A DNA stretch of 50,511 nucleotides from Octopus sinensis (GCF_006345805.1 NW_021834203.1:1-50511); one strand, 5' to 3'; shown: positions 1 through 46,176, numbered from the stretch's first letter. Made by a program: numbers and translations. Notes: generated from the letters alone by a model not told the origin.

Positions 1-299
1 AAATAGGTGGCGACTGGATAAGTTTGAGTCTCCGTATTATTCTGCTGCAGAAATAATTAATATTTTATCAAATAATCGCGTCGAGGAGGTAGTTTAAATA
101 CACTCAACCCTCTCAAATTGGCCAATAAAATTGAAGAAACCAAAAATGACCAATTAGAGAATAAAATCGATAATTTTTAAAAGAAACTACTTTAATGTGT
201 CTTCAGTTAGCATATTTTTTTAAATTAAAGAAAATTAAAAAATTTTGCATCAACCAATTTTGGATCAAGTTTTTTCTTAATGATTGCATCATTATAACA

Positions 300-1175
300 G
301 TCACCGCCGGCTTCGAACAAATCGAACTATTCCTTTAACTCAGTCAATTGTTTTGACTTCACTGTTTCATCCTTCTATACTTTCTCCTTTTCTTCATTTC
401 CACTGTTTGCAAACGGTCTAGGCACGTGATGCCCACCTCCACGATAACAATCTCCTCGGTGACCTTACCGTGGACCAAAATATCGGGTTTGTTGTGCTGG
501 ACAACAATCGAGGTGGATATGGGGGTATCCACCTTATTTCTCCCCCTCGAGTTCTCACACAGATTGAACTCGATGAGTTCGCAACTTTCTGGACCGCCTT
601 AAGCCATACTTATGCAGAACAGAAGATGGAGAAACCTCACAAACTTGTTATGTCTTCATTTGTAATCATGGTAAAGCATACTTTCGCACTTCGTGGCTAA
701 ATGGTCAACGGTCATCGCCTTATTTTTACACGACTTTGACTGGGTCACCACACATAGAAGTGTTAGTCCCGACTTGTTGTAGATGAGCTCCAGACCCACG
801 GCCTTCATAAAACCTTCCAAGGCTTTGCCCATAGAGTGGAGGATCTCTGAAGACCGAGCGAACAGTTTAATGTCGTCTATCAACATGAGATTGTTGATGC
901 TAAAACATCGATGTTCGATCGATATTTGTTCGAATTGGGCAGTGAGGACTCTACTCAGCGGTTCTAGGCAGAGGACAAACAGCAGCAGAGGCATACTGTC
1001 GCTCTGTAATATGCCCCTCTCTAGCTTAACCTCGCCTATATCGCATTTGTTGTAGTGTAGATGCACGTTCCACCTGTCCATCACAGTTGCAACAAATTTG
1101 ATAAACCAAGAAGGCAACTTGAGCCTTCGCAGACACTCAGCGAGGTAGGCATGGTCAACCGAGTCATATGATAAT
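300..1175 (-). mobile_element. Internally deleted R4/Dong-like non-LTR retrotransposon remnant (RT + zinc knuckle + restriction-like endonuclease)
   Basis: RT motifs YDSVDH, RGILQSDSMPLLLF and LMLIDDIKLFA are joined directly to TVDHLATKCESMLYHDYK*RHN (knuckle), then EIRVDT..QHNKPDILV..IVEVGITCLD..KKRRKY (PD-(D/E)xK); stops and frameshifts present. Confidence 0.85.
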
Positions 1176-1599
1176 AAATATGTCCAACTACTCATTGAAT
1201 CATTTAAACGAATTAAAGTTGAGTTCATCAGAGATATTTAATCAATGTTTTTCAAACAATGTTCTCGAAACTGGAATTAATCCATTCCTTAAATCTTGAA
1301 ATCTGAGAGAACAAATTCCAATAAATTAGATAAGTTTAAATACTGTTGAATTGATTGATCTGATGGATACTAATCGGAACTTTATTAAAACAGGTGAGAC
1401 TTTGAAATTAATTCATCTAAAATTTACTTGTGGTGTACTTTTTAACAATCTTTCGCTAAGATGAGACATTTTTGGTCAAATTTTAAATAATTTTAGATTT
1501 TGTAGTTTTAGTTAGGACGACATATTCAAAAGAAATTAACTAACATAGTAATGAAGATAATTTAAGGAAAGTGTTTTAAAATAATGAAGATTAGGAGCA

Positions 1600-2550
1600 A
1601 TACATGTTAGAAGAGTGGTGATAACCCCACTAAACTTATCCCATTGACAGATATTGTGTAAGCTAAAATATTATTTATGAAAATATACTATGGGAAGATG
1701 CTCCTGTTAATTCGGCTTCTTTAATCGCATCGTAAGCTATTCCAACGGCCTCACTTTGCGTGGTGTATATTCCAGATAACTGGCAATAATTATAAAAAAT
1801 ACTGTGTGGTTATCCAATTAAATGCAATGTCTCCTCCAGGCCCGATTGTCAAAAAATAATTTGTATTTTCTACTATGATAAAAGATCTTTTTCAAACGTA
1901 TAAATTCCTCCTTGTACACAAATACAAAAATTATGATCCAAAAATATTACAAATATTTAAATATGCCGATAATTGGTCTGGAAGTATGAATGCCGGCAGG
2001 AATCCTTCGATGAAGGTTATCAAAATCACTGGGTTCACATTATAAGACAGTCTAAAAACAAATAAATTTGAAAAATACGTATAAAAACGACGAATCTGCG
2101 CTGTCATTGCACGAAATACGGCCATATTTCCAGAAAAACCAATAATTGCATTATTAGTTATATGGGAGATTTTGATCAAATTGTCATCATCTGATTTGTC
2201 AATACAACAATTCATTACAATGTTCGTCGGGAGTATTTGGAAGATAGGTAACTCTGGTATCTGAACCAAGAACAACCCCTCCCACATAAGGTATGACTAC
2301 GACTGTTGTGAAACTTGTTGGATTCTAAAACAGAATTATAAAATTTCAAGCCACCATTCGAAACATTGTTATTAACTTAGCACGCTAAAATATTCATAAA
2401 TATCACATTAATCACGGTTTAGTGTTATGACTACTTCAAAGACGCCACAGTCTGAAATTTCAGTTTTGAGATACAAAATCAAAGAAAAATTGGAGATAAT
2501 TCTCCTTCAAAAAACAAGGGATTTTCTTCTTTCCTCGAATATATTTTATC
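1600..2550 (-). CDS. Probable multi-exon gene of unknown function (core open exon 1931-2287; boundaries unresolved)
   Basis: 118-aa open frame with a hydrophobic C-terminal half, flanked by short GT..AG AT-rich segments and further open stretches (FLTIGPGGDIAFNWIT; LSGIYTTQSEAVGIAYDAIKEAELTG); I saw no differences between the two copies in the core exon; no family recognised. Confidence 0.4.
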
Positions 2551-3251
2551 AAATGGATTGTAATATAAACAATACAGATTATTTTTATTAATTACATTGC
2601 TAGGTTATACTGATGAAGAATTAATTAAAATTTATAAAAAGTTGCTGTTTCCGCCATCCAAATTCACTTCTTCAAGTCCGGAAATTCAACATATGTTTTC
2701 ACCTGGCTACAAAGAGTATTTAAAGGCAAATAACCTCCTCAACAAGAAAGTCACATTCGGTGATGGACACCCCAGAAGATGCTGTTTTTGTGGTCGACAT
2801 GTCCAAAAAGCTTCGGCGAGTACTTTTATGCTTGGAAGGAATCACTATGGGCATATTCGTTGCATACCATTTTAAATTCTTTCCAGAATCCGAACAAGCA
2901 AAAGTCGAAAACTTTTATTAATTGTTTAAGTTTATGTATTATCACAAACAGTAGGGGCGAGAGAGTACCTACATTTGTCTCAGGGCCAACAGTGAGGTCT
3001 GTTTTTGTCAGTCACACTTTTATCATGTCATCATCGTTAAAAAGGCAGGACCTTCATAGGTAGGTCTCGACGGACGGAGGCTCTCGATGTCGATATAATG
3101 ACTGGTCATCACTCGGAAATATGCCGCAGTTATAACAAGTCAAACAAAGAAAAATCTCTAATTAATAAAGTTAATCTTAGTTCAAGGTTAATGTTGGCCA
3201 TGGGTGTAACATATTACTCATTATTAGTATTAATTAAAATATATTAGATTG

Positions 3252-6200
3252 TTAATTGTCATGTTTCAACTATTTTGAACACAAATATTTGACTTACTTT
3301 ATTTCTATCGTCATCAACCATCATCTCCACGTCGATTGCCTTCAAATATGCAGAATAACTCCACTCCAGTTTATTTCCGTGAAATACTGCAGTCTTTGAC
3401 TTGGGTGCCTTTTGTTTAATTGGTTCGGGCTTAGTAATAACACTTAATTCAAACATTTGATTCAACTTTTGGTTTTTTATGAGACGTGTTTTTCCTAAAC
3501 TCGACGAATTCAGTCCAACATGCCAACAACCAACGAAATGAAGAAAACTATAAACTTAGACTGTCATAAACAAACATGGGCTTCCCGAAACAAGTACGGA
3601 TTCAAATCATTCGAAGAATCCAAAATCTTGTCAATGGTTGACTTGTTGGCCACAATTTGGATGGGAGGCGGAATTTGTGAGTTTAGAAAGCAATTTATGA
3701 TCGAACTGACTTTATGCCGTTTGAGCGAATCCTCACATTTTGATAAAAATAATTGCTAAAATGAAAAAACCACACAAACTTTATATTTTTGTATTTCTTC
3801 CCAAAAAAGCAAATTCGTTTCACAATTCGGTCCTTTGCTTTGAAGAAAGGATCGGAATTTTTTGTGAGTCTCAGAATCCTTCATCGCCGATCGAAAGTCG
3901 AGAATCTCCATCGCGCTTGGCTCACGTTTATTTTTAAACTCCTTTGAACGGTAAAACGGTCCTCGACCTCGGATTTGTTTTTTTCGTTGACCTGTGGTGG
4001 AACCAACCCATCAATTTCTTCTTTTTTCATTTTCTCTTCTGCCTTCTCCACAATAACTGGGGAAGGAGTGTCTCCAGTTTTGCTGAGAAGAAAGGCGGGA
4101 ATCCATTTTGAGTTCAGACGATTGGCTACGTGGGTCTGCATTATATTTACAATCTTTGGTGGAGGAATATCATTCAGGAGTTTCCCCCACCCACCACAAA
4201 GAGCCATTGCCTATAAATATATATTTTTGGAATACTTTGTTCTGCTCTCGCTCACTGGCGGGAGAATTCTCACCAAAAAAGTATCGATTATTCAAATACC
4301 GCCCTTTGATCTCGATTAATTTGACATCACAGGCTAACTGTAGAGAAATACAGAGAAACGAGGACCTTTTCAGTGTGGGGAATCCTTTTAAAGATCTCCA
4401 CGTCCTGCCAGCACTCAAAGTCCACCAAGGCGCCATTTTCCTTTAAAAATTCTTTAAAGTTTTCGATTTCCACCCTTCAATGAGCCAGAGAAGGTACCCT
4501 TGTGAGAAGAGTGTGGAGATTGTGACCTTTGGAGTCCTTTGGGGAGACTTTAGAGCCTCCTCGTCAAAAATAGGCTCCACATAGTCTTCCATGGGTTCAA
4601 AAGGAAAGAGTGGATCCTTCAAATAAAAAAGATTTAAAACTTTTTTTGCACATCCGCGGGCTACAAATAAATTGACAGCTTTAGATTTGGTCTCCAAGCT
4701 GAGAGTCACTGTTTTTGTCGGGACCTACAAAAGTAATTTTAATGTTCTTAAAAAACAACAAAAACGTTAAAAAATAACTTTTTTGAGACTTTCGACGTCT
4801 TTTTCGGTGAAAGAATTGAAAGGTTTGATTAATCTGTGGACTAAAATGTCCTCGATTTGCTTGAAGAGATCCTTCGAAGGACACTCCAATCTCAAAAAAA
4901 TATCTTGAACTAATTTTTGATCCAATTCCAAACAATTTTGAGCCTCCGAATGCACATAAGTCGAATATATATACTAAATAAACCACATAATTAATACATG
5001 AGCATATTTGTATGTCAATGAAACATCAAATGGACTTTGATCAAACAAAGATTTGTAATCCTGGATCAGATTCCAAGTTTTATAACAGTTTTTTAAGTAT
5101 ATATTTCCTGTATTGAGAATGTGGTCGTATATGACATAGCCTGATGTCCTTTCTGTGGTTAGACAGTGGCAAAGAAGGGCATGACTGTCCTCTGTGTTAG
5201 GTCTTGTCTTTGTAGATGGGGATATAATATAAATACTTGGAGTTGTTTTGATTCTTGGCTGAAATATACTTGGAAAGGTTTGATAAGTTCATTTTCTATT
5301 TCGATAATATTTTTATGAACATTTTCGATATAATTTTCTTTAATTTTATTGAGTTTATTTCTGAAAAATTAATTGTAATAAAATTATTTTAAAAATAACC
5401 TTTGTTGTGTTGTTTGTATAAAACTCGGAATTCTAAAACAAATATAAATAATAATAAACCCCTCAATGAGATATTCATTTTGAAGGAAGGCAGGCATCCT
5501 AGAAGTACTCTCACATTAAAATCACCAATAAATCAAAAGAGGCTCAATAACTTTATTCTGTAGTCTTAGAGTGGTCTCTTTGCTCCAATCGACAGGATTT
5601 GCAACCTCTTCGTAGTGAAGCGGATTTAGAGATTTGCAGGATGTAGGTCGAGTAAATAGATCTCTGATTGACTTTGGAAACCTGCAGTATTAGAGTATTA
5701 GCCGACTGTATTTGTTCTTGGATAAGTTTAATTTTGTCTATTTCTAACCAAAATTCCATCAATTTATCAACATTGTAAAATTCTAGAAACTTCTCGAACA
5801 TTCTAAGCGTTTCGAATGACGAAATTGTGTTTATTGGTCTGTTTAAGATTTATAACAAAAACTTGTCTTTTTTATGTATTTTGTCTTTTTTATAGAAAAT
5901 GTCGTCAATGTCTTCAAATGGGTCTTCATATTTTGTTTTTTTAACCACTTTTGTTTGCAGAGGAGACCTGGAAAGTGATCTCTTCTTTTCAGATTCTTGT
6001 TCTATTTCATTTTTTTCGATTTTTTCTTCTTTAAAATAATTTTCCGAATCATTTTCAACAACTTTTGAAATCTCTTCAAAAGATGACATATTTCCCGCCA
6101 TTTTATCATCAGTGAGAGGATCAAAACTAATAAAATCAATATTATATAGTTCTGTTGAGTCTTGATTTATTAAACTGTTATTTCTGGACAGTTCTCTGTT

Positions 6201-6827
6201 CTACAGCCAAATAAAAATTGGGGACCACCGAGGCGAGTGTTTCTCTTCTAGAAGTATTTAAATCTTCAGTCAAGGAAGTTGAGAGATCAAAAGTGACTTG
6301 ACTAAGATCAGTATTTTTGTCAATCTATGATTACGTAATATAAAATACTTGAGAAAGTAATTTCCCGATTCTATACTTCATGTAGTATTCACTTTGTAGA
6401 AAATAAGGCAGTCGATTGGCCTTTACCCACGTGAGTCCTTGGGACCCCACGAGGATCTAATTTGGAATGAGTAAGATGTACTTCTAAGTTATATTTGACA
6501 TTGATTTCTTCATGTGGGGTCACTCGGGAGAGAACTTGTGAGCGAATTTTGTTGATTAGTTCATCTTTTTGATGACTGTGGACTTGAAATGTGAAATTAT
6601 TTGAGTTGAATTTGAGAGTTTTTGAAAAGATCTTAAAATGGGGTGAAAATTCTCACTTCGGAAGACAAAAAACGATTAAAACAGTCGAGAAATAATTCGT
6701 CTGTCGATAAAAGTTTTTCCTTAAAAATAAAAAAGACTTTTTAATACAAAATTAAATTCGTTACATTCTGGTGGGTCTAAATTATTTATTTCATAATAAA
6801 ATGACTTATTTTCAAAAGAATTGACAT
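3252..6827 (-). CDS. RGS22: Regulator of G-protein signalling 22 homologue (multi-RGS-domain protein), many micro-introns
   Basis: Spliced translation gives PPECNEFNFEKLLSTDELFLDCFNRFLS, WVKANRLPYFLQSEYYMKYRIGKLLSQ, YLNNRYFFGENSPASEREQNKAMALCGGWGK..QTHVANRLNSKWIPAFL, LFWEEIQKYK..IINCFLNSQIPP..PYLFREA..WTEFVEFRKN and WSYSAYLKAI, matching human RGS22 as I recall it, in order; the GT-AG introns I modelled are mostly 24-29 nt and restore frame; central exons not all traced. Confidence 0.9.
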
Positions 6828-6857
6828 GGTTTCTTAGCAATAATTATTTTAAAAACT

Positions 6858-7574
6858 TTATTTTATAAAATATAAATAATCATTGAGAGAAATACGATTA
6901 AAAGTACAATCAAACTGCTCACCAAATGCCCAAATAAAATCCTCAAAAACATCATTCACAGACACTCTCCGCCCACATTCCAGACTGAGAGAAGTAGACT
7001 TAATTCCTTCGAGTCCACACGGAACAATTTGATCGAAGTATGCCATATCTGTGTCACAGTTCACTCCAATTCCATGCATTGTCACAAATCTACTACATTT
7101 AACACCTGTCAAGTGTGTAATAAAACAAAGACCTATTGAGGCCAGTTTTCGGCCCTCTACCCAACAGCCGATATTCTCAGTAGTGTAGGCTGAGAGACCA
7201 AATTTGGCACACAACAAAATGGAGGTCAATTCCAGCCTCTTGATATACCATTTTAAACTCTTTTTCCCCAAATGTAGAATTGGGTAGGCTGTGAGTTGGC
7301 CTGGCCCGTGGAAGGTTATCAGCCCGCCTCTATCGACCTTATAAAAGGAGGCAATTTTTTGTAAATTGGTGGGCTCGTTGATGTACTGAGAAGAGCGTAG
7401 ACCGACAGTGTAGGTAGGCTCGTGTTCTACTAGTAAGAGACAGTCTAGTCCCAGACAGTCCCCCTTTTTAGTTAATTGGTTGATTAAAGCAGAGTGGATT
7501 CTTTGTTGTAACCTCCAAACTGTTAGATAATTGGAGTAACCGAGATTTATAATATTTATTACACGAGAACTCAT
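6858..7574 (-). CDS. LIPT2: Octanoyltransferase LIPT2/LipB, with one in-frame 27-nt intron (7106-7132)
   Basis: LLLVEHEPTYTVG, VDRGGLITFHGPGQLTAYPIL, GCWVEGRKLASIG|VKCSRFVTMHGIGVNC and FDQIVPCGL; removing gtctttgttttattacacacttgacag restores the SIGV..TxHG consensus. Confidence 0.95.
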   Translation of the reverse strand: MSSRVINIINLGYSNYLTVWRLQQRIHSALINQLTKKGDCLGLDCLLLVEHEPTYTVGLRSSQYINEPTNLQKIASFYKVDRGGLITFHGPGQLTAYPILHLGKKSLKWYIKRLELTSILLCAKFGLSAYTTENIGCWVEGRKLASIGLCFITHLTGVKCSRFVTMHGIGVNCDTDMAYFDQIVPCGLEGIKSTSLSLECGRRVSVNDVFEDFIWAFGEQFDCTFNRISLNDYLYFIK

Positions 7575-7664
7575 AGAAAAACATTTTATTTTAAATTCTC
7601 AAAAATATATTAAAAATAAAAACTGAACATGCATTCTCTCACGAATTTACTATGAAATAATAAT

Positions 7665-8230
7665 AAAGGCCCAAACATTCTTTATAGGGATAAAATCTGG
7701 GCTTTGTGCAGGCCATTTTAGCAAATTGATATTATTTACTTGAAAAAAACACTTTGCTATTGCCGAAGTATGTTTCGGATCATTGTCTTGTTGGTAACTA
7801 AAATCTTTCATCACTTAAAATAATTCGCTTGCAAAATATTTTGAAAAATTATTCCATTTTGGCATAGCGTCAATCATTGAAGTTTACGGTTTTTGGTAAG
7901 AAGTGGTCTTTTCGTGGGCGGATAAGCATTCAAACAAATTTTTCGTGGTATTTCTTATTGTCTGAGAAGTTACTGATTTCCCTGCTTTTCTAGCAGATTT
8001 AAAACAGTTGGAATTGACATCCACTTTTCAAGCCTCATTAATTTAAAATATTTCTTGACGATTAAGCATTGATGGTCGACCAGACCCGACTTTTTTGTTT
8101 GTTGAGCACTTATTTAAATAGCTTTGATAATTTGCGATACGAGCAATTTTTTAATGATATCTTGTATTTTTTTCCAGATTTATACATGCCAATTATTCTG
8201 CCTTTTTTTCAGATGCTGAATGACTAGCCA
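7665..8230 (-). mobile_element. Degenerate, internally deleted Tc1-like transposase
   Basis: Broken frames give GRIIGMYKSG, KVGSGRPSML, RPRKRPLLT, ILSDE, YQQDNDPKHTS and LLKWPAQSPDFIPIKNVW. Confidence 0.85.
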
Positions 8231-8441
8231 TGTAGAGAGATTACAAATGATTGAATTTGAACGAATTTATAAAAAAAATAAAACTTTTTCTTTCGTGCAT
8301 TTAAATAAATTAAATCTGTTCAGTTTTTTTTGTTTTTAAATTGTGATTTCATGAAAAACCGCATAAATATATGTTTCTTAAAAAAACTAAAAAATTTAAA
8401 ATACTTTAATCTAATATTAAGAAAAATAAAACAAAAAAAAT

Positions 8442-9900
8442 TTAAACATCTAAACTTTTACACTCAAAAATCTCCTTTGGACGATATTCATACCCACGAT
8501 AAAAGGGGTAAATAAAATAAACAAACAAATTACATTTCCCGCCAAAATACATCATTTTCCCGCCATTTCTTTTCCCCAGCACATTAAAACCAGTAAAAAA
8601 TTGCACAAATTCCAAAACAAAAGCCCAGACAGACAGCCAAAGAAAAGTCAGACACAAATTCCCAACAATGCAATCAACCAATGACTTTTCAAAACCACTC
8701 AACCATGAAATTGCCGGAAACATCAAAGACAATGCCGCTTTGATCCCATGGTTTCCAAATCCACGAGAAAATCGATAAAAAAATGAAGTGGCAGACATGA
8801 AAGTGAAAAGGATGAAGGAAAATAGAAAGAACATGAAGAACTGAGGTTTGTTTCCCAGTCCATTGCACTTCCCAATGACAAAACTGTGATATCCTTGAGA
8901 AATGATACATTTTTTGCACAAAAAACAATGTGTGGAGTCCACAGGGACTTGTTTGCTGCAAACATAACAATATTTAGTTTTGACCCATGTGGGAACATTA
9001 AGATTAGAGTTGTTAAATAGAGATATAGAGAGACCGTTGAGAAGACATTCCACAAAGAGAAATATCAGGACTAGTGAGAGGACAGTCCCATTCCCGATGG
9101 CAGGAAGGACAGTATAAAATTGATGAAATATGCATATGAGTGTACAAAAAATAAATAAAATTCCTATTTTTTTAATTAGACATGATTAAGACCAATATTA
9201 GGGGAGTCATGGGAGAAGCAGAGAAATGACATACAAGAACTTATAAATTAAATATTTATTATTTTATTAGATTTGATATAATATGAATATATTTAAAGAA
9301 AACGAATCATATTAAATTGCATGTTCTATACATAAAATTTATAAACTAAAATTTATTTTATTAAAATTTAAATTTTCTTTATCGTGATTTACAGTTTTCT
9401 TTTTGGATCATTTTTTGTTTATCCAACTGATATTTTTATTTAAAGTTCGATTTCTGTTATATTTAATAAATTCGCGTTGAAATTTTTTGTATCCAGTGTT
9501 TTCCAATAGTTAAAATCTTATTCTTTCTCAGAAGAAATATTCACATAAAAATTATCGCAGTTATCTTATAAATATATTTCATTTGGATTAATGAGTGTAA
9601 AGAAAATAAACAAGATTCCTATTATTTTAATTCAACATGATTGGGACTAATATTAGGAGAGTCATATGAGGAGCAAAAAATGGCATACAAAAACTTATAA
9701 ATTAAATATTCATTATTGGATCCAATTAGGAAGACACATAAAAGCAGGGATTTCAAACAATCGATTTCTGGACAGTAAATCCGCCTATAAGTAAAAATAA
9801 AATAACAAACAAGAATGACTTATATTTCTTGTGTTGGTTCCTATGATTGACAACATTGAGACAAAATATAAAATATAGTTTGACGATAATCTCCCCCATG
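8442..9900 (-). CDS. DHHC-type zinc-finger membrane protein (palmitoyltransferase fold) with the DHHC motif replaced by GYHS; 5' end unresolved
   Basis: YCYVCSKQVPVDSTHCFLCKKCIISQGYHSFVIGKCNGLGNKPQFF fits the Cx2C..HCxxCxxC..(DHHC)..CxGxxN..F pattern, with hydrophobic segments on both sides; the large exon extends to a splice acceptor near 9166. Confidence 0.75.
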
Positions 9901-11246
9901 GGATGAAAGTATGTCGAACTCTTAGAATAACAAAATTTTTAAATGACGAATAAATATATAATTAGAGAACAACTATTAAAAAAAAGAGCTTCCAGTGTGA
10001 CAGGACATTTTGAGATATTCAAATTAACAAGAAATGAATAATTTTTATGGATTACATCAAGCCTCCAGAAATATTCATTGTTGATAATGTAACGTAAAAA
10101 TGACTAAATTTATCTTTTTACATAGAAAATCACAATTCTGAATTTCGAATTTGAGAAGTTTGTAAAATTGGTGTTGTTTGAAGGTCTTTCAAATTCGATT
10201 AATAAAGAATCATTACTATTACTACCGTAATCAATAGAAAAGTCTTATTTTACTATTTAGCAAAATGTTTTTCTTAAGCAGTTTATTCTGTTTGAGATAA
10301 AACCATAGTCAAAATATGCAGCTTGCGATTACGTACTACAACACCGAAATTCAACTGCGAATTTTTTAGCGACGTTAATATACAGTGTGTATTATACACT
10401 ATTGTATCTAGATTTTTCCCATTCCAAAAAATCAGTTAAATCAATCTTATAAATCAGTGTATGTTATATAAAAGTCATTTCCTGTGTGATGACATGAGAT
10501 AAACTGATCAGTAAATAACACAAGGGGTATAGTTAGGTGTAGATAAGTCTCTACATGCTTATATCCAATCAACTGTTCTTAAAAGAACTTTGAAAATTAT
10601 CTTATTTAATAATTGCGGATCTAGTCCTTTCCTGACATTTAGTCAGCAAAAAACACCTTCTCGAAAGTCTACAGAATCAGAGAAGAAGAGCGAGAAAGAA
10701 AGGAGGTGTATGGAGTGGCGCCCTCTGCTTTCTCCAAGACTTTAACTTTGATAAATATACAGTTAGTATCGGAATATTATCTATCCTGTTTATATTATAG
10801 CTACATTATAGTGACGTATGCTCCACAAATGTTAGTTGATATCCCATGAATTTTTTTAATGTTAAAAGTTTCCTGTCCTTTCTTTTCGAGCATTTAGTAT
10901 TCTCCAACAAACCAGCCGTGCAAATGTTAGAAATTGCAGTAAATCTAGATCTAAATACAGGGGGATTTTCTTTCTGTGAGAAACGTAATTATATAATTTA
11001 GCCTAGATGGATCTGCAAAATTCCAGAAGACGAAGAAAATTTCATCTATATATTCATTCAATAAATAAAAATCTTACAAAATTGGGAAATATATTTAAAT
11101 TAGTTAAATCATTATTTTTAATACAAATCTCACTTTAAAAATTGATCGCAAAACAATTCTAGCATCTAATTTTGTTTTATTTAATTTATTATTAAATTAA
11201 AAAATGATTTTTTGTTTTCTAGTTGTTGTATGGCTGTATAATAAAC

Positions 11247-12106
11247 ATGACGGAGTACGTCAAAAACGTATTTTTTATTATTTTAAATAATTTGTAGAAA
11301 ATCTGGACTGTTAATAGATTAATTGAATTATTTGATTGTTCAGCTGATTGGGGTGAAAACATGTTTTTAGTTCATAACGGAAATATGGACAAAATATCTG
11401 AAGAATATTTAAAAAATAAACAAAAACTATCAAAAATCGACCTTTTATTCCACAGCTATTCTGGTTATGATTCAAATAATTAAAAATCAGAAAATAACTT
11501 TATAATTGGACCCACAGGAATAAAAAAATTATTGATCGATTTGAATTTCGATCACAAAAAAATTGAAGTTCTCATTTTAGCTTGGAAAATGGGAGCCAAA
11601 AAACAGTGCCAATTTACTTATTACGAATTTTTATCAGCCTTCCATGATTTAGGGTGTTTCAAACAAATATACGTAGTGTCCAAACATTGAGAGAATTGGC
11701 CACAGAATGTCTGAAATATGCTGAAATTGTCCAAAAAGACAAGAAAGAATTTTCTCGAATTTATTTCTTTGTTTTTGAGTATTCAAAAAATGTTGATTTT
11801 CTTGAATTTGACTTGGCCATTGCTTATTGGCGCCTTTTGTTTGATGAAAATGCGTTTTTATCCACTTGGATTGATTTTATTTCTGTTTTTTTATTTTTTA
11901 CATTTTTGGTAGGATGATGGGAAGAATATTACGAGGGATTGTTGGAATACTTTTTTGGTTTTTTATAGACAATTTCCTGATTTGGAAAGTCTTCGTTTTT
12001 ATGATTTTGGTGGTTGGATTTTACGTTTTTATTTTAAGCTGCTTGGCCACTTAAATTTGACCGGTTTGTCAGATACGCTCAAAATATTCTGGCTTTGGAT
12101 ATTTAA
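11247..12106 (+). CDS. DCUN1D: DCN1-like protein (defective in cullin neddylation; cullin-binding domain), 6 exons
   Basis: Introns 11268-11297, 11464-11490, 11654-11676, 11885-11912 and 12013-12038 give IIGPTGIKKLL..VLILAWKMGAKKQCQFT..EF, YFFVFEYSK..AIAYWRLL..W.DF..ITRDCWN..YDFGAAWPLKFDRFVRY*; specific paralog not determinable. Confidence 0.9.
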
Positions 12107-12249
12107 AATATTATATTTTTTTATGTTTAAAAAACTGTGTTTTAATAAGATAGGCAATATTTTATTTATGTCTAACAAGTGAGAGTAAGATATTACATCC
12201 AAATTCAACACAAGGGTTACTTTTAGCCAAAACTAATAGTTCTCCATAA

Positions 12250-16646: not shown

Positions 16647-17346
16647 ACGATGTCCTCGACTTACATGATGAGGTCCTTAAAACCTTCCCCCCCAAAAAAA
16701 TGTAAAAAAAATTTTCTGCATTTTGGTTAAAATGAACAACCACGATGTCCTCGACTTACATGATGAGGTCCTTAAAACCTTCCCGCCAAAAAATCAAAAA
16801 ATTATTTTCTGCATTTGATTAAAATGAACAACGTTAATGTCCTCGACATTCATGATGAGGTCCTTAAAACCTTCCCCCCCAAAAAAATTAAAAAAAAATT
16901 TTCTGCATTTTGGTTAAAATGAACAACTACGATGTCCTCGACTTACATGATGAGGTCCTTAAAACCTTCCCCCCCAAAAAAATTAAAAAAAATTTTCTGC
17001 ATTTTGGTTAAAATGAACAACTACGATGTCCTCGACTTACATGATGAGGTCCTTAAAACCTTCCCCCCCCAAAAAAATTAAAAAAAAATTTTCTGCATTT
17101 TGGTTAAAATGAACAACTACGATGTCCTCGACTTACATGATGAAGGTCCTTGAAACCTTCCCGCCAAAAAATCAAAAAATTATTTTCTGCATTTGATTAA
17201 AATGAACAACGTTAATGTCCTCGACTTACATGATGACGTCCTTAAAATCTTCCCCCCCAAAAAATCAAAAAATTATTTTCTGCATTTGATTAAAATGAAC
17301 AACGTTAATGTCCTCGACATTCATGATGAGGTCCATTAAAACCTTC
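16647..17346 (+). repeat. ~93-96-bp satellite array A (~7.5 units, two alternating subtypes)
   Basis: gtcctcgac recurs at 16652, 16747, 16839, 16934, 17028, 17124, 17217 and 17310. Confidence 0.95.
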
Positions 17347-18095: not shown

Positions 18096-18350
18096 TGCCT
18101 GCCGCATCTCTGCCTGCCGCATCTCTGCCTGCCGCATCTCTGCCTGCCGCATCTCTGCCTGCCGCATCTTCGCCTGCCGCATTTCCGCCTACCACATTTC
18201 TGCCTGCCGCATTTCCGCCTACCACATTTCCGCCTGCCGCATCTTCGCCTGCCGCATTTCCGCCTGCCGCATCTTCGCCTGCCGCATTTCCGCCTGCCGC
18301 ATTTCCGCCTGCCGCATTTCCGCCTACCGCATTTCCGCCTGCCGCATCTC
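18096..18350 (+). repeat. GC-rich 15-bp minisatellite (~17 units), followed by an A-rich low-complexity tract to ~18777
   Basis: (c/t)gcct(g/a)ccgcat(c/t)tc units; explains the six overlapping periodic ORFs at 18.0-18.45 kb. Confidence 0.95.
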
Positions 18351-18777
18351 CCCCCATCTCCCCCAAATAAAAAAAGAAAAAAAAGGAAATTACAAAGAAA
18401 CACGAAAAAATCAAATATAAAAGGTTAAAAAATAAAAAAAAGAAAATAAAGCACAAAAAAAAGAAAATAAAACAAAAAAAGAAAAAAAAATTTAAAAAAT
18501 AAAAAAAAATAAAAAAATAAAAAAAATTAAAAAATAAAAAAAAGAAAATAAAAACACAATAAAAATCAAAAAATAAAAAAAAAAACTAAAAAATAAAAAA
18601 AAGAAAATAAAACACAAAAAAAAGAAAATAAAACAAAAAAAACAAAAAAAAAAAAAAAGTTAAAAAATAAAAAAAAAGAAAATAAAACACAAAAAAAGAA
18701 AAAAAAATTCTAAAAAATAAAAAAAATAAAAAAAAGAAAATAAAAACACAATAAAAAACAAAAAATAAGAAAAAAAT

Positions 18778-18962: not shown

Positions 18963-19603
18963 GGTTACATTAAACCAGGTAGTTTTATACATCTACATAA
19001 ACTTATAGTCAATTCCTAGTTAGGGTCAAACTACTAAGTAAAGTCAACAAACTAATAAATTCTCCCAGCGAGACGGAGGGAACAGCTGTTGCCACGCATG
19101 ACAGCCAGCAGGATCCTCTGAATGAGGAAAGTAAATTCCCTAGGGTCCTTGGACCGCGAAGAACAAAGATGTCCCAATTTCTTTAGGGAAGTGAGGGTCC
19201 CGGAGCCAAAGAAGAGACCAACTTATAGTTGTTTGTTGCTCCTTCAGAAGATTCTTGTTTTGACATTTTTATAAATTATGAAGCATTTAGATTTTTTCTC
19301 ATTATTCTAAAATATCAATTATAAATTTTAAAATATTATTTTTATTTATGAAATCGGTTTTAAAGCTCATTCTTCTTTGGCATCGATTTTAATTTTTGTT
19401 ATCGAATATATTTAATCCCAAATACAAGCCTGGGTATTTGTCAATTTATAGATTTTTTGATTGATCGGATCTAGAAATTGAGTGGTCGCTCGCTGCGCTC
19501 GGTCGCGCGCTGCGCTCGCGACATAATAAGACATCCCATGATAAACTATACACCAAAATTTTTTGTGCAATCAAAAGGATTATTCTCAAATTTTCAGGAT
19601 AGA

Positions 19604-20753
19604 TTTTTTTGGTTGAGGTGGCGACGTACCTCTCTTGCACAATGTCTAAAACACACAGTACAACCGGACAGGCTATCAATTCTATCCTTTAACGTTCGTG
19701 GACTCTGCCAGACCTGGAAACAACAAGCACTCTGTAATGACATGGATAAATACCGTGCGGACATCGGCTGTCTACAAGAGACCAAACAAAAATCTGGAAT
19801 GGACCTAACCTATGGAAATTACCGAATGATCTTGCTACCTTCCGACTGCAGACACTATGGACAAGGTTTTGTGATTCACAAGAGGCTCGGTGTCAAACGC
19901 TGGTGGAGAATTACAGATAGGATTTCAGCAATCCAAGTACAAATCGGCGGTAAAGGCAGGCCTAATGCAGTCGCAACGGTCATTAACGTATACGCCCCGC
20001 ATAGTGGCAGAATCGTCAACGCTCCTGAAGAAATCGATGAATTCTATGAGGTACTGACCCGGACATACCTATCCTTGCAATCGTCTACCCTCCTGCTCGT
20101 CGTCGGCGACTGGAACGCCAAGACTGGCATCCGTCGAGGCACTGAAACTTTTATTGGACGGCACGGAAGAGGATATAGAAACCTCCCAGGAGCCCTATTG
20201 GCTAATTTCTGTAAAACACTCGGGCTATTCCTATGTAACACGGCCTTTGATCACTCTGCTCGGCACAAGTCTACCTGGACTGGCAGGAGACGTGGTGAAG
20301 ACGGGAACTATGTGCCGATCTACAACCAAATTGACTATATTGTGTGTCGCCAAAGAGACACATGGCTTCTACAAGACTCTCGTTCTTACGGGGGCTCGGT
20401 CGTTGACAGTGACCACAAGATAGTCATCGGCAGATTCAACCTGAAGAAATTATATGTGCTGGATAAAACAAATCGTCAATTCCCTCATAAATCGGACAGA
20501 TACTTGTCAGTTGTGCAAAAGGAGCTTAAGCTGAGGGCTGAGAACACCAAAGATATGGATAGCAAACTCGCACTGAAAGGCCGGCGTGCTGGCATCCAAA
20601 AACAAATAAAGACCCTAAACCTCCAATATGGCCGGGATATCCTGGCTTCCCGTCTTGGAGAACTGGAAACCCTCAAAGATAATGCACGCACGTTTATGGC
20701 TTTACGGTTTCCTTGTTTATGTTCCTGCGGGAAGTGCTAATAATAATAATAAT
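19604..20753 (+). mobile_element. RTE-like LINE deletion derivative: apurinic-endonuclease domain only, (TAA)6 tail, 15-bp TSD
   Basis: SFNVRGL, CLQET, NVYAP, VGDWNAKTG, HKSTW, QIDYI and DSDH all present; aattttcaggataga at 19589-19603 and 20754-20768; empty site seen at 15891-15953; no RT motifs. Confidence 0.9.
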
Positions 20754-29108: not shown

Positions 29109-29992
29109 CAGTGATTCTCAACCGTGGTGCATGTGCACCATTTTTGGTACATGGAAAATACTCGAATGGTGCATGGAAAAAAAATTGGTACATGGTATTA
29201 TTTTTTTATTATCAGTAATTAGTACATTACGATGGTTAACCATTATCATTTGATACCTATAAATACTCGTGTCAATCACATGTCTGGTAATAATTCATGT
29301 ACGCCTCGGATTTATCGTAAAGAATATCTGAAATATGGATTTATCCCTTCCAGTGGAAACAAATCTAGGCCTTTTTGCATAATCTGCAAAATTTCTTTGG
29401 CCAATAGTTCAATGAAATTATCAAGATTAATACACCATTTGAGGACTAGACATCCAAATCTAGTCGGATCTTCGCTTGAATATTTTCAAAATATAAAAAA
29501 CAAGATTGATGAACCTACAACTCTTCAAAAGTTAATCACTCATCATGCTCTTGCGCGAAAAAGTATTCCTTTTAACCTATTTCATAGATGGGTTACTTGC
29601 ATCCTACAAAATTGCCCATATTGTTGCTAAAAATAATGATACCCATGATTTGGGAACAAATAATTAAAATTTTATTATGTTTTCCAACAACATATCTTGT
29701 GGAATCAGGATTCAGCGTAATAAACAGAATATTGAGCGATGAACGTAACAAGCTTGATATTTGCTCGCGAGGAGATGTCAGATTATTTTTAACACGCTTG
29801 GACCCTGATATTCAGGAACTAATTAAAATGCATGAAAGCCAAGGCTCTCATTAAATAGTTAAAAAAAGATTTTAAGTCAATAAAATTAATTAAAAAATTA
29901 AATAAGTCTTTGTTTCTTTGGTACACGAAATAACTTGGTTTGGTACACTGACGTTTTTTTTGGTACATCAAAAAAAAGGTTGAGAACCACTG
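29109..29992 (+). mobile_element. 884-bp internally deleted Buster/Charlie hAT element
   Basis: TIRs cagtg(a/g)ttctcaacc (14/15); flanks atgtagac / atctagat (6/8, central TA); BED finger YLKYGF..RPFCIIC..HHLRTRHP joined to C-terminal FPTTYLVESGFS..RGDVRL..QGSH*. Confidence 0.92.
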
Positions 29993-33196: not shown

Positions 33197-34031
33197 GGGT
33201 TTTCCACACTTTTTTGAGACTTTTCACGCAATTTCGTGTAAAGTAGATTATCGGCTTTTCGTTTCAAGCAATTCTGCCACTTTTTCAAGCAATTTCGTGC
33301 ATAAGAAGATTATCAGTTTATTGTTTCAAGCAAATTCGCTACTTTTTCAAGCGATTCCGTCACTTTTTCAAGTAATTTCGCCATTTTTCAAGCAATTTCG
33401 CCAAATTCTTAATATTTATTTTTTAAAAATATACTCGTTTTACTAATATAGATTTTAGTTTATAGCTCTATGAATGAATTATTATTTATTCAAAAAGGAA
33501 AGCCGAAAAAGAGAGCAAAATTAATAAGACAAAAAATCATTAAGTTTAATCAATTTCAATTTCTAATGGATCAGTGAAACTGTTTTAAACATCGATGAAT
33601 AGTGCTTTTGCTGATGACTAAATTTTGTTCTGAAAAAAATTTATTTCGTAAATCACGTAATGTTATCGTAGGGTGACAATCGACCCATTCTCTAATTTGA
33701 TTTTTTTGATTTTCATTCAGCTTTGATGATCTATTTCCACCTGTTGGTTTTTTAAATATTCTTCCCTCATTATGAAATGTGTTAACTATTGAAACTATTG
33801 TACTCCTTGGAAGTTTAAGTATTTTTGAGATTTCCGTATTGCTTAGTCCTGAATTTGAGTGAGTTATTATCAATCTTCTAGTATCATTGTTAATTTTGTT
33901 TCTACTCATGACAAAAAATGTAGTGTTTAATAGGTTTATAAATGTATTTAATTGACATAAAAAAATAAATTTATTTTTAAAATAAATATAAAAAAATTTG
34001 GCGAAATTGCTTGCAAAAGTGTGGAAAACCC
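33197..34031 (-). mobile_element. IS630/Tc1-mariner deletion derivative retaining an open N-terminal HTH ORF (33571-33909)
   Basis: TIR gggttttccacactttt at both ends flanked by TA(TA); subterminal caagcaatttc repeats; ISKILKLPRSTIV..GGNRSSKL..HPTITLRDL..ISKSTIHRCLK; no DDE region. Confidence 0.85.
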
Positions 34032-35411
34032 TATATTTTTTAAATACTTTTAAGCCAGGTGTCCATTTATCCGCGTGTCTATTTATCCGACTATGACATT
34101 TTCAACCACTGACTGAACAGAATGAATGACTTTTTTTAATTAAATAAGCTATTAAATTTATATTGGTGTCATTTTTTGACAAAATCTCGGTTTTGGAACA
34201 CATTCAAATTAAAAAAAATTTCACATGATTTACATATTTTACCAAAAAATATTCAAAATTTTTAATTGACAAACTTTATTCAAAGATAATTATTCAGGGT
34301 TTCTCAAAAAAGATTTTAGTCCATAATTACAAAATTTAATTGTCAATAAATAATTTTATAAGTTTTAAACTGATATTTTTATATATTTCTATATTAAAAA
34401 ATGACTTAATCAAAAACTATGTTAAGAATTTGTTTTAAATAATGTACTCATTGCAATGTAAATTGAGTTTCTACAGTCCGTGGAGAGTCATGTTTGTAAT
34501 CTTGTCACTTGTCTGTGTTTCTAATGTTTCCATTTAACTACCTAGAAAGTTGAAAAATTGGCAATGCTTTTTACAAAAGAAAGTCTTATTTTTAAACGAT
34601 GAGACTACAATTAAACCTGTAAATTTGATTATATAATTTAATTAGAACATTTGATACAAAGATCACTTTGAACTTTGATGACGTTTATGCTCCAACCGAT
34701 TTTGTAAGAACTTAATAAATTAATTAAAAAAACAAATTTTAAATATGAATCTCCCAGAATTGAACAAGGATTATTAAAATATACGTAATTGGATAATCTA
34801 ATACGTTTTATAGAGTATAATAGTCAAATATCTAAACTTAAACCGAAAATGAACTCATAATTAAACTCGAAATAATTATTTCACCGAGTTTTAGAAAACG
34901 AGAGGCTGAAATATTTACATACCGTAGAACTCAGAAAAGACAGGTAAGATAAATTTTAAATAAAAATTTGATGAAAGGGAAAGTATGATTTGACAAGTTA
35001 AAAAAATGTAAGAATTTCATAACTAGTAACTTTAATAAAAATAATTTAATTATAGTCACAATCACGCTGACTTTAAGCAACAAACAAAGATTGTTTAACT
35101 TCAGAAAATAATGGCATAAATTTTGACTGAAAGTAATGATTAGTCAAAATTATGAACCGACTAAATATGTCGATATTCCATTTCTATTTAATTTTGTATT
35201 TAATTTATTTTTATTTTTAAAAACATTTGGAGTCAAAATGAAAAATTTAAAACCGCAAGAAACGTTTGTATAAACTTTAATTTTCTTTATAGATGTCAAG
35301 AAAACAAATTTTGGCCGAATGTTTAGGCGAGCTTTTATTAATTGTACTCCTTTTATGGAGACAAAGTTTACTGACTTTCTTTACTAAAATTATGCAAATT
35401 TTAAACGTACA

Positions 35412-37690
35412 TCTTAATAATAAAATGGTATGGTGTGTGTCTGTCTGTCTGTCTGTGTGTCTGTCTGTCTGTCTGTGCACACCCACATTCAAATTGTTAC
35501 AAACCAGATCAAATTGTCAAAACCTTCCCTTTTGTAGTTATTCGATAATGAGGCACAATAAAAGGTTGATATCCTCTAAGAACCTTCCTGTCAAAAAATT
35601 TTAATAAGAAAGAATATCCTCGATGATGAGGTCCCCCAAAACCTTCAAGTCAATTTTCTGCGTTTTTGTTAAAATGAACAACAAGAAAGTCCTCGACTCA
35701 CATGATGTGGTCCCCCAAAACCTTCAAGCCAAAAAATTAAAAAAAATTATTTTCTGCGTTTTTGTTAAAATGAACAACAAGAAAGTCCTCGACTCACATG
35801 ATGTGGTCCCCCAAAACCTTCAAGCCAAAAATTAAAAAAAATTATTTTCTGCGTTTTTGTTAAAATGAACAACAAGAAAGTCCTCGACTCACATGATGTG
35901 GTCCCCCAAAACCTTCAAGCCAAAAAATTAAAAAAAATATTTTCTGCGTTTTTGTTAAAATGAACAACAAGAAAGTCCTCGACTCACATGATGTGGTCCC
36001 CCAAAACCTTCAAGCCAAAAAATTAAAAAAAATATTTTCTGCGTTTTTGTTAAAATGAACAACAAGAAAGTCCTCGACTCACATGATGTGGTCCCCCAAA
36101 ACCTTCAAGCCAAAAAATTAAAAAAAATTATTTTCTGCGTTTTTGTTAAAATGAACAACAAGAAAGTCCTCGACTCACATGATGTGGTCCCCCAAAACTT
36201 CAAGCCAAAAAATTAAAAAAAATTATTTTCTGCGTTTTTGTTAAAATGACCAACAAGAAAGTCCTCGACTCACATGATGTGGTCCCCCAAAACCTTCAAG
36301 CCAAAAATTAAAAAAAATTATTTTCTGCGTTTTTGTTAAAATGAACAACAAGAAAGTCCTCGACTCACATGATGTGGTCCCCCAAAACCTTCAAGCCAAA
36401 AAATTAAAAAAATTATTTTCTGCGTTTTTGTTAAAATGAACAACAAGAAAGTCCTCGACTCACATGATGTGGTCCCCCAAAACCTTCAAGCCAAAAAATT
36501 AAAAAAATTATTTTCTGCGTTTTTGTTAAAATGAACAACAAGAAAGTCCTCGACTCACATGATGTGGTCCCCCAAAACCTTCAAGCCAAAAATTAAAAAA
36601 AATTATTTTCTGCGTTTTTGTTAAAATGAACAACAAGAAAGTCCTCGACTCACATGATGTGGTCCCCCAAAACCTTCAAGCTAAAAAATTAAAAAAATTA
36701 TTTTCTGCGTTTTTGTTAAAATGAACAACAAGAAAGTCCTCGACTCACATGATGTGGTCCCCCAAAACCTTCAAGTTCAAGGTAAAATTAAAAAATTATT
36801 TTTTCTGCGTTTTTGTTAAAATGAACAACAAGAAAGTCCTCGACTCACATGATGTGGTCCCCCAAAACCTTCAAGGTAAAAAATTAAAAAAATTATTTTC
36901 TGCGTTTTTGTTAAAATGAACAACAAGAAAGTCCTCGACTCACATGATGTGGTCCCCCAAAACCTTCAAGGTAAAAAATTAAAAAAATTATTTTCTGCGT
37001 TTTTGTTAAAATGAACAACAAGAAAGTCCTCGACTCACATGATGTGGTCCCCCAAAACTTTCAAGCCAAAAAATTAAAAAAATTATTTTCTGCGTTTTTG
37101 TTAAAATAAACACAAGAAAGTCCTCGACTCACATGATGTGGTCCCCCAAAACCTTCAAGCCAAAAAATTAAAAAAATTATTTTTTCTGCGTTTTTGTTAA
37201 AATGAACAACAAGAAAGTCCTCGACTCACATGATGTGGTCCCTCAAAACCTTCAAGCCAAAAAATTAAAAAAAATTATTTTCTGCGTTTTTGTTAAAATG
37301 AACAACAAGAAAGTCCTCGACTCACATGATGTGGTCCCTCAAAACCTTCAAGCCAAAAAATTAAAAAAATTATTTTCTGCGTTTTTGTTAAATGAACAAC
37401 AAGAAAGTCCTCGACTCACATGATGTGGTCCCCCAAAACCTTCAAGCCCAAAATTAAAAAAAATATTTTCTGCGTTTTTGTTAAAATGAACGACAAGAAA
37501 GTCCTCGACTCACATGATGAGGTCCTCCACAACCTTCAAGCCTCGTGAGGCCATTAATTAGCTTAGCTATCTTTTTTCGATGACATAAATTCTTTTTTGT
37601 TAAATTTTTCGTTAAAAAAATAAAATAAAAGCTCTAATTGTTATCGACCATGAATAGACTGTGCAATTATCAGATTTTGAAAACCACTAA
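35412..37690 (+). mobile_element. Second Helitron-like element: same TC-start/(GTCT)n header, satellite array and shared downstream block
   Basis: a|TCTTAATAATAAAATGGTATGGTGTGTGTCTGTC header homologous to 16479; downstream gaataga(c/g)tgtgcaatta..gattttgaaaa shared with ~17566. Confidence 0.7.
35620..37540 (+). repeat. 95-96-bp satellite array B (~20 units, highly homogeneous)
   Basis: Unit atgaacaacaagaaagtcctcgactcacatgatgtggtcccccaaaaccttcaagccaaaaaattaaaaaaattattttctgcgtttttgttaaa; unit starts at 35674, 35770, 35865 and onward. Confidence 0.97.
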
Positions 37691-39059: not shown

Positions 39060-39420
39060 GGACATTTCAAATCAACTTGGACATCGACAGTCCGCCAGAT
39101 ATTTCACTGTCAAAAATGAGATTATCAGACAAGTCATTAGACATTGTGAAGTTTGCAAATTTTCGCGTTTTTTAAAAGTTTAAGATTATTTTAACTTTAG
39201 ATAGGAAATATAAATCAAAATGTGTTTGCTTCTTGTCCAAATAAACGTGAAAATTCAAGTTATTACAATGCTGCGAACAGGAGAATGAATGTTCATAATA
39301 GTAAGTATACTTTTAGCGTAGGAGATAAAGTATTAATTAGAAAGATTAATAAATAGGTGGCGACTGGATAAGTTTGAGTCTCCGTATTATTCTGCTGCAG
39401 AAATAATTAATATTTTATCA
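39060..39420 (+). mobile_element. Gypsy/Ginger-type integrase remnant: zinc-binding end joined to the C-terminal tail, core missing (tail also at 1-70)
   Basis: QLGHRQSARYF..IRQVIRHCEVC, then YTFSVGDKVLIRK..DKFESPY. Confidence 0.55.
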
Positions 39421-39649
39421 AATAATCGCGTCGAGGGGGTACTTTAAATACACTCAACCCTCTCAAATTGACCAACAAAATTGAAGCAACCAAAAATGGC
39501 CAATTAGAGAATAAAGTCGATAATTTTAAAAAAAACTACTTTAATGTGTCTTCAGTTAGCATATTTTTTTAAATTAAAGAAAATTAAAACATTTTTCATC
39601 AACAAATTTTGGATCAAGTTTTTTTTAATGATTGCATCATTATAACAGT

Positions 39650-40520
39650 CACCGCCGGCTTCGAACAAATCGAACTATTCCTTTAACTCAGTCAATTGTT
39701 TTGACTTCACTGTTTCATCCTTCTATACTTTCTCCTTTCTTCATTTCCACTGTTTGCAAACGGTCTAGGCACGTGATGCCCACCTCCACGATAACTCTCC
39801 TCGGTGACCTTACCGTGGACCAAAATATCGGGTTTGTTGTGCTGGACAACAATCGAGGTGGATATGGGGGTATCCACCTTATTTCTCCCCCTCGAGTTCT
39901 CACACAGATTGAACTCGATGAGTTCGCAACTTTCTGGACCGCCTTAAGCCATACTTATGCAGAACAGAAGATGGAGAAACCTCACAAACTTGTTATGTCT
40001 TCATTTGTAATCATGGTAAAGCATACTTTCGCACTTCGTGGCTAAATGGTCAACGGTCATCGCCTTATTTTTACACGACTTTGACTGGGTCACCACACAT
40101 AGAAGTGTTAGTCCCGACTTGTTGTAGATGAGCTCCAGACCCACGGCCTTCATAAAACCTTCCAAGGCTTTGCCCATAGAGTGGAGGATCTCTGAAGACC
40201 GAGCGAACAGTTTAATGTCGTCTATCAACATGAGATTGTTGATGCTAAAACATCGATGTTCGATCGATATTTGTTCGAATTGGGCAGTGAGGACTCTACT
40301 CAGCGGTTCTAGGCAGAGGACAAACAGCAGCAGAGGCATACTGTCGCTCTGTAATATGCCCCTCTCTAGCTTAACCTCGCCTATATCGCATTTGTTGTAG
40401 TGTAGATGCACGTTCCACCTGTCCATCACAGTTGCAACAAATTTGATAAATCAAGAAGGCAACTTGAGCCTTCGCAGACACTCAGCGAGGTAGGCATGGT
40501 CAACCGAGTCATATGATAAT
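39650..40520 (-). mobile_element. Duplicate of the R4-like RT/knuckle/RLE remnant
   Basis: Same translation as 300-1175. Confidence 0.85.
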
Positions 40521-45600: not shown

Positions 45601-46176
45601 GAAGTATTTAAATCTTCAGTCAAGAAGTTGAGAGATCAAAAGTGACTTGACTAAGATCAGTATTTTTGTCAATCTATGATTACGTAATATAAAATACTTG
45701 AGAAAGTAATTTCCCGATTCTATACTTCATGTAGTATTCACTTTGTAGAAAATAAGGCAGTCGATTGGCCTTTACCCACGTGAGTCCTTGGGACCCCACG
45801 AGGATCTAATTTGGAATGAGTGAGATGTACTTCTAAGTTATATTTGACATTGATTTCTTCATGTGGGGTCACTCGGGAGAGAACTTGTGAGCGAATTTTG
45901 TTGATTAGTTCATCTTTTTGATGACTGTGGACTTGAAATGTGAAATTATTTGAGTTGAATTTGAGAGTTTTTGAAAAGATCTTAAAATGGGGTGAAAATT
46001 CTCACTTCGGAAGACAAAAAACGATTAAAACAGTCGAGAAATAATTCGTCTGTCGATAAAAGTTTTTCCTTAAAAATAAAAAAGATTTTTTAATACAAAA
46101 TTAAATTCGTTACATTCTGGTGGGTCTAAATTATTTATTTCATAATAAAATGACTTATTTTCAAAAGAATTGACAT
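42602..46176 (-). pseudogene. RGS22: RGS22 copy 2, with a 1-nt deletion in an early coding exon (real frameshift or consensus error)
   Basis: caaggaagtt (6271-6280) versus caagaagtt (45621-45629) inside exon IDKNTDLSQVTFDLSTSLTEDLN. Confidence 0.65.

Follow-up and report, generated by a model that had tools for sequence, protein, structure and literature searches.

How does a gene obtain a messenger RNA (mRNA) of its own when its start codon lies only 30 nucleotides (nt) behind the stop codon of its neighbour? The question is raised by a stretch of 50,511 nt deposited under Octopus sinensis (GCF_006345805.1, NW_021834203.1:1-50511), the whole of which we call here the window. On its minus strand, a gene for the octanoyltransferase LIPT2 is followed by an RGS22-like gene. 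An initial annotation took this junction for a candidate operon in which the downstream mRNA is released by spliced-leader (SL) trans-splicing. The spacing of 30 nt is real, and every minus-strand coordinate that it gave for the stop of LIPT2 and the ATG of RGS22 is correct. The two genes form a compact pair, head to tail, in which the transcription units must overlap. The explanation that we tentatively favour, with a probability of about 0.4, is that RGS22 has a minimal core promoter of its own located in the tail of LIPT2. The features on which the argument turns are the following:

7650-7814, minus strand: remnant of a Tc1/mariner DDE element (Pfam DDE_3, expect value (E) 1e-4), ending 75 nt upstream of the LIPT2 ATG
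7133-7574, minus strand: LIPT2 coding exon 1, with the ATG at 7574-7572 (open reading frame (ORF), Pfam LplA-B_cat, homologue alignment)
7106-7132, minus strand: LIPT2 intron of 27 nt, in frame, GTCTTT..GACAG (alignment)
6858-7105, minus strand: LIPT2 coding exon 2, with the stop TAA at 6860-6858
6857-6867, minus strand: the 11-mer TATAAAATAAA, composed of TATAAAA (6867-6861) and AATAAA (6862-6857) and overlapping the LIPT2 stop
6828-6857, minus strand: spacer of 30 nt from the LIPT2 stop to the RGS22 ATG (read from the sequence, without differences between the two copies of the locus)
6833-6856, minus strand: candidate mini-intron of 24 nt, GTTTTT..CTAAG, which fills most of the spacer and whose AG is the proposed trans-splice acceptor
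3259-6827, minus strand: the whole RGS22-like gene, about 20 exons and about 1007 amino acids (aa), with three RGS domains (codon-scored exon chaining, Pfam RGS)
6806-6827, minus strand: RGS22 coding exon 1 of 22 nt, with the ATG at 6827-6825 and an A at -3, coding for MSILLKI plus 1 nt
6777-6805, minus strand: RGS22 intron 1 of 29 nt, GTCATT..TTTAG, linking the ATG to the conserved exon
6748-6776, minus strand: RGS22 exon 2, N PPECNEFNF, where the conserved N-terminal motif begins

The upstream gene is a genuine full-length LIPT2/LipB octanoyltransferase gene. The Pfam LplA-B_cat profile matched across the full domain (E 1.7e-29), and 700 homologues were found, the best of them, with 46-48% identity, belonging to molluscs. 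The marks of the family were all there, namely the RGGxxTxHGPGQ motif, the conserved Lys (K-x-A/S-x-I-G) and the Cys of PCG; the catalytic motifs RGGLITFHGPGQ, RKLASIG and VPCGLEG align with 12 homologues, and the C-terminus falls inside the homologues' range in the alignment. LIPT2 is not a single exon, and here the alignment corrects the initial annotation, which missed an intron. The 27-nt segment at 7132-7106 would encode a 9-aa insert, GLCFITHLT, that was found in none of the 12 aligned homologues, and its removal restores ASIGVKCSRF, matching A(A/S)IGxxxSRF. After splicing the product has 229 aa from two exons, compared with 238 aa for the unspliced ORF. An exact match to these 238 aa was sought in public assemblies and gave no record, the nearest homologue having 48% identity. 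The possibility that LIPT2 was an intronless retrocopy inserted in the RGS22 promoter is ruled out by this 27-nt intron. The intron stays in frame without a stop, so that the gene mimics a single ORF, and automatic annotation could overlook introns of this kind. Towards its 3' end the composition of LIPT2 changes, with 82% A+T in the last 60 nt versus 58% in the remaining coding sequence, and the C-terminal tail is not conserved among the homologues in the alignment. At the opposite end, the space for a LIPT2 promoter is limited by the Tc1/mariner remnant. The top LIPT2 match (P0001) is an isolated mRNA-like contig and uninformative on the linkage to RGS22.

The gene that follows is likewise a genuine orthologue of RGS22, and the ATG at 6827-6825 is its authentic start. 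An exhaustive HMMER search with one exon (3950-4210, minus strand) retrieved RGS22 of Lingula anatina. Neither the spliced N-terminus (449 aa) nor the full model of 1007 aa had given a match at E<=1e-3 when used as query in word-indexed searches. A BLASTP comparison of the spliced protein with the long Lingula form (P0134) gave E 7e-76 for a C-terminal stretch of 466 aa and E 3e-10 for the N-terminal part. In a global alignment the first 73 residues are collinear with this long form, with 44% identity and a single 1-aa gap. Met1 pairs with the Lingula Met1, and exon 1 contributes three residues shared with Lingula, I3, K6 and I7 (MSILLKINPPE versus MPQITVKIEPPE). What distinguishes an RGS22 orthologue, the multiple RGS domains together with the N-terminal PP..L.TD.F..FN.FLS motif, was found. 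Between the upstream stop at 6846-6844 and the PP motif, the frame of exon 2 has no ATG and therefore a splice is required; the sole solution with an intron of normal size is the ATG at 6827, 22 nt of exon and the 29-nt intron at 6805-6777. The donor and acceptor scores of this intron fall inside the range of 18 other introns, and the introns next to it measure 28, 25, 25, 24 and 25 nt. The earlier proposal that the ATG, the 22-nt exon and the 29-nt intron land in frame with the PP exon is thus borne out by the Met-to-Met alignment with Lingula and by the normal intron scores. Past the N-terminus the internal junctions of the model are approximate. The codon-scored exon chaining reproduced the hand splicing. 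Here also the best match (P0121), an intronless ORF in a metagenome contig with unrelated neighbours, is uninformative on linkage.

The small signals at the junction were then compared with their frequencies in the window. The AATAAA over the LIPT2 stop (6862-6857) and the AG 5 nt before the RGS22 ATG (6834-6833, followed by aaacc) are present, as had been described, but as operon signals they do not exceed chance. In the window, 42% of all ATGs have an AG in the 12 nt before them, and 11% of all TAAs share bases with an AATAAA. This particular AG ranks at the 52nd percentile of all AGs when scored with an acceptor matrix derived from 18 local introns. A different picture is given by the TATAAAA at 6867-6861. 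It had been argued that there was no room for an independent promoter, a statement that is too strong because this heptamer is found 34-40 nt upstream of the RGS22 ATG, and only 1.1% of all ATGs in the window have one between -50 and -25. Its placement is a rarer coincidence than that of the AG or of the AATAAA. Two readings of the 11-mer TATAAAATAAA are possible, a TATA box for RGS22, 40 nt before its ATG, or the poly(A) signal of LIPT2.

The arrangement that we favour would work as follows. The last ATG upstream of the RGS22 start is at 6883-6881, and for this reason scanning translation would need the 5' end of the mature RGS22 mRNA to lie downstream of it, at most about 55 nt from the start codon, which in turn would make RGS22 transcription start in or before the last LIPT2 codons. 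The core promoter would then be embedded in the A+T-rich C-terminal tail of LIPT2, a tail that may be free to carry regulatory signals because it is not conserved among homologues. With this TATAAAA the start site would fall near 6842-6832, and the leader would measure about 5-15 nt. The LIPT2 mRNA might end in the spacer, via the AATAAA at 6862-6857, or within RGS22 intron 1, where there is a second AATAAA at 6790-6785, so that both mRNAs would abut or overlap without trans-splicing. Three same-strand intervals are visible in the window and the other two, of about 870 and 900 nt, contain transposon fragments; when these are discounted they come down to a few hundred nt, and therefore the 30-nt gap can be seen as the extreme of a compact local layout and not as a regime of its own.

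Several points weigh against such an embedded promoter. A lone TATA-like heptamer in DNA with 80% A+T is weak and was found after the fact, and no canonical TATA was present at the same distance at the other four genes in the window. A leader of 5-15 nt is unusually short for an animal mRNA. The upstream regulatory DNA would have to sit within the LIPT2 coding sequence. Besides, two genes on the same strand with 30 nt from stop to ATG are typical of the SL-resolved operons of Oikopleura (PMC1488885).

The window has about 33% G+C and is animal nuclear DNA with very short GT..AG introns; the 19 of the RGS22-like gene range from 22 to 54 nt, with a median of 25 nt. In a 2026 survey of 51 animal genomes, introns this short were found only in myxobolid myxozoans and in Dicyema japonicum (PMC13644364). 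Intron length in Dicyema is 26.2 +/- 1.9 nt, with a mode near 26 (PMC2222250), and the mean of 38 bp in D. japonicum implies a tail of longer introns (PMC6736024). The genome of this species has 67.5 Mb, 5,012 genes, 49% repeats and 36.7% GC (PMC6736024), while the GC of Henneguya is 29% (PMC13644364). In D. japonicum the 3' splice signal has reportedly shrunk to a bare AG, which the average score of the AG at 6834-6833 fits (PMC13644364). We consider that the source of the DNA is probably a dicyemid, a myxobolid myxozoan being less likely, because of the introns of 22-29 nt, the best relatives of LIPT2 (molluscs and other bilaterians, 46-48% identity), the many LINE, Tc1 and hAT-like fragments in the window, as in the description of D. 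japonicum (PMC6736024), and the well-conserved RGS22. This last gene is associated with cilia and sperm, and myxozoans are not known to have cilia.

After the embedded promoter, the explanation that survives best, although we regard it as doubtful, is an SL-resolved operon. Both genes would be co-transcribed from the LIPT2 promoter, the precursor would be cleaved and polyadenylated after the AATAAA at 6862-6857, and an SL would be joined to RGS22, for example at the AG at 6834-6833. For dicyemids this would mean that SL trans-splicing and operons exist in a phylum for which neither has been reported, LIPT2-RGS22 being the first example, something that we hold to be slightly more doubtful still. 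The tight spacing, the AATAAA over the stop and the AG between stop and ATG speak for it, as does the long conserved downstream ORF, which needs a monocistronic mRNA for efficient translation. Rotifers are among the animals that use SL trans-splicing. It is also sporadic in other spiralian groups (a flatworm, a chaetognath; PMC7986045), and dicyemids have apparently never been examined for it. On the other hand, the AG is average and of a kind that precedes a large part of all ATGs, and the strong GT donor located 24 nt upstream of it would favour cis- over trans-splicing in a polycistronic precursor. AATAAA has been reported absent at the operon junctions of Oikopleura and at most of those of Ciona (PMC1488885), and the pair is the single tight one among the approximately six genes of the window. 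Acceptor-like sites upstream of five ATGs (RGS22, LIPT2, a proteasome-beta-like gene, a DHHC gene and a DCN1-like gene) showed no enrichment, with percentiles of 40, 74, 58, 32 and 68, and the idea of a general hint of trans-splicing at all five genes was rejected. Rfam families, including the SL RNAs, gave no match to the window even at E<=1, although a window of 50 kb is not expected to hold an SL RNA gene. In the literature searched we found no report of nuclear SL trans-splicing or operons in dicyemids, orthonectids or myxozoans, and the two dicyemid genome papers mention neither. The operon is thus neither supported nor refuted by the sequence, and we prefer the promoter in the LIPT2 tail, by a small margin, because no SL is known in the phylum and the acceptor signal is lacking.

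A third explanation, which we find unlikely, is a read-through or 5'-extended transcript without any SL, either dicistronic or starting within the LIPT2 coding sequence. In one version of it the 24 nt at 6856-6833 would be removed as a mini-intron, leaving 6 nt between stop and AUG, and RGS22 would be translated by reinitiation or from a shorter 5'-extended form. Dicistronic mRNAs without an SL do exist in animals such as Drosophila. The candidate GTTTTT..CTAAG has the modal intron length of this DNA, its donor is at the 98.7th percentile and its acceptor at the 52nd, and elements as intron-like occur at 0.11 per kb in non-genic DNA. In simulations of AT-rich spacers, 10.6% contained some GT..AG pair of 22-30 nt and 0.13% one this good, with thresholds set post hoc. 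The more appropriate null is however that of all ATGs. About 11% of them are preceded, within 70 nt, by a candidate of equal quality, which makes this one ordinary (89th percentile), and we rejected the spacer as significantly intron-like. Reinitiation after an ORF of 229 codons is inefficient in eukaryotes, and a 5'-extended leader would include upstream ATGs, the nearest being the one at 6883-6881.

Still less probable, and in our view very unlikely, is that LIPT2 is nested in a long intron of the RGS22 5' untranslated region (UTR), with an upstream non-coding exon cis-spliced to the AG at 6834-6833 or to that at 6778-6777. The AG 5 nt before the ATG could serve as acceptor, and longer introns exist in D. 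japonicum, whose mean is 38 bp against a mode near 26 (PMC6736024, PMC2222250). Nevertheless, an intron of more than 750 nt would be needed in a gene whose 19 introns measure 22-54 nt, and directly upstream of LIPT2 is the Tc1 remnant, with no identifiable upstream exon.

The last of the alternatives, to which we give very little credence, is that the arrangement has no function: either the assembly is at fault, or this is a duplicate in decay and one of the genes has ceased to be expressed. A small remainder of the probability was assigned to none of the five explanations. The locus is part of a direct repeat of at least 11.2 kb (1-11219 and 39351-50511) with 99.1-99.8% identity, the copies lying 39.35 kb apart and reaching both window edges. 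This repeat may have arisen by a recent duplication, segmental or tandem, or the assembly may have left haplotypes uncollapsed; there is also an indel of 61 nt (8195-8255) in one of the copies. The junction of the second copy is:

46119-46229, minus strand: exact match of 111 nt to the junction of copy 1, with the LIPT2 stop at 46207 and the RGS22 ATG at 46176

The initial annotation had noted that the arrangement is preserved there. The identity of the junction is correct, but copy 2 does not provide independent evidence because it is a nearly identical duplicate. In favour of decay, exon 6 of RGS22 is one base short in copy 2 (45576-45673; 6226-6324 in copy 1), TTCCTT having become TTCTT, with a frameshift and a premature stop that reflect either a pseudogenised duplicate or a sequencing error. 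The LIPT2 copies differ at six sites clustered within 250 nt (7145-7392; 2.4%), four of them non-synonymous, suggesting locally relaxed constraint or gene conversion. Against it, copy 1 has both genes intact, with about 690 and about 3000 nt of coding sequence and every conserved motif, the junction is the same in both copies, and the RGS22 exons differ by 0.17% versus 1.6% in the flanking DNA, which suggests constraint. Finally, an in-frame LIPT2-RGS22 fusion by alternative splicing would require hypothetical introns of 63-200 nt (e.g. 6895 to 6833), and we discarded it as unsupported and biologically implausible.

The rest of the window contains other genes and abundant repeats, the middle 27 kb being mostly transposon material:

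659-1237 (minus), 19475-20737 (plus), 29223-29627 (plus), 33574-34101 (minus) and 7650-7814 (minus): transposon fragments
about 1680-2361, minus strand: proteasome beta-subunit-like gene with mini-introns, downstream of RGS22 (weak PDB match, E 0.006)
11247-12180, plus strand: DCN1-like gene with mini-introns (Pfam Cullin_binding), with an upstream ORF of 3 codons just before the ATG
16647-17346: array of a 93-nt unit, 7.4 copies, related to the 95-nt satellite (about 80% identical)
18097-18351: microsatellite with the 15-nt unit GCCTGCCGCATTTCC, 17 copies
18427-18777: A-rich tract of 350 nt, after the microsatellite and adjoining a LINE-like element
35653-37542: satellite of a 95-nt unit, 19.8 copies, 96% matches

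The transposon fragments are of the reverse transcriptase, LINE-type endonuclease, BED zinc finger (hAT-like), Tc1/Sleeping Beauty-type helix-turn-helix and DDE_3 types, and the A-rich tract could be the tail of a retroelement. We considered the satellites of 93-95 nt as arrays of SL RNA genes and rejected them, as there was no Rfam match and the two arrays do not share a conserved Sm-like AUUUUGG; they are unlikely to be RNA genes. The stop of RGS22 is about 900 nt from the ATG of the proteasome-beta-like gene. The DHHC palmitoyltransferase gene, on the minus strand, has its ATG at 9232-9230 followed by an intron of 29 nt. Its first-exon region (9136-9263) is duplicated about 455 nt upstream on the same strand (9591-9717), with 85% identity, and the duplicate could be an alternative or a decayed first exon.

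What the pair would mean depends on the explanation. If the embedded promoter is true, miniaturisation at the level of the gene would be extreme within a genome otherwise half made of repeats, and the coding sequence, the poly(A) signal and the core promoter of the next gene would share one 11-mer. If the SL-resolved operon is true, one more animal phylum would join the scattered list of trans-splicing lineages, and trans-splicing would coexist with splicing machinery adapted to introns of about 25 nt, with signals reduced to GT and AG. The question would then be how a trans-acceptor is picked by a spliceosome that recognises an intron mostly from its length, about 25 nt. Independently of this, the 22-nt first exon of RGS22 and the in-frame 27-nt intron of LIPT2 are features that automatic annotation tends to miss and that matter for gene models. 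Rather than evidence for operons, LIPT2-RGS22 is a well-defined and cheaply testable locus.

The resemblance to known systems can now be evaluated. In SL-resolved operons the intercistronic regions measure about 100 nt in C. elegans and 23-30 nt in Oikopleura, and there are none in Ciona (PMC1488885); for Oikopleura, operons have been predicted at distances of <=60 bp (PMC7986045). The likeness to operons of the Oikopleura type, on which the initial annotation relied, is fair in terms of spacing, while the other elements that it cited carry no weight. As in Oikopleura dioica, there are genes on the same strand separated by a few tens of nt, with compact structures and short introns. Oikopleura, however, has a proven SL of 40 nt and thousands of such pairs, whereas here one pair was seen and no SL is known. 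The upstream cistrons of Oikopleura reportedly have no AATAAA (PMC1488885), and LIPT2 does have one. Furthermore, the 30 nt here are counted from stop to ATG and so must hold both UTRs, compared with the 23-30 nt that are intercistronic in Oikopleura.

The SL1-type operons of C. elegans and those of Ciona are similar in that the upstream poly(A) signal nearly adjoins the downstream acceptor, with no intercistronic DNA, and the C. elegans SL1-type operons retain the canonical AATAAA (PMC1488885). In both systems the expression of the two genes may be mutually exclusive for each transcript. They differ from LIPT2-RGS22, a pair read from genomic sequence, in having been established from SL-bearing complementary DNAs and dicistronic precursors. 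The phylogenetically nearest groups with polycistronic units resolved by a single SL are represented by Schistosoma mansoni and Spadella (PMC7986045), and unlike them Dicyemida and Orthonectida have no SL reported. In the miniature annelid Dimorphilus, a compact spiralian, SL and operons have been explicitly excluded. Microsporidia and nucleomorphs have tiny or absent spacers and place their signals inside the neighbouring coding sequence, with no trans-splicing required. The dicyemid genome differs from theirs in not being compact as a whole (67.5 Mb, 49% repeats; PMC6736024), its compaction being local to the structure of the genes.

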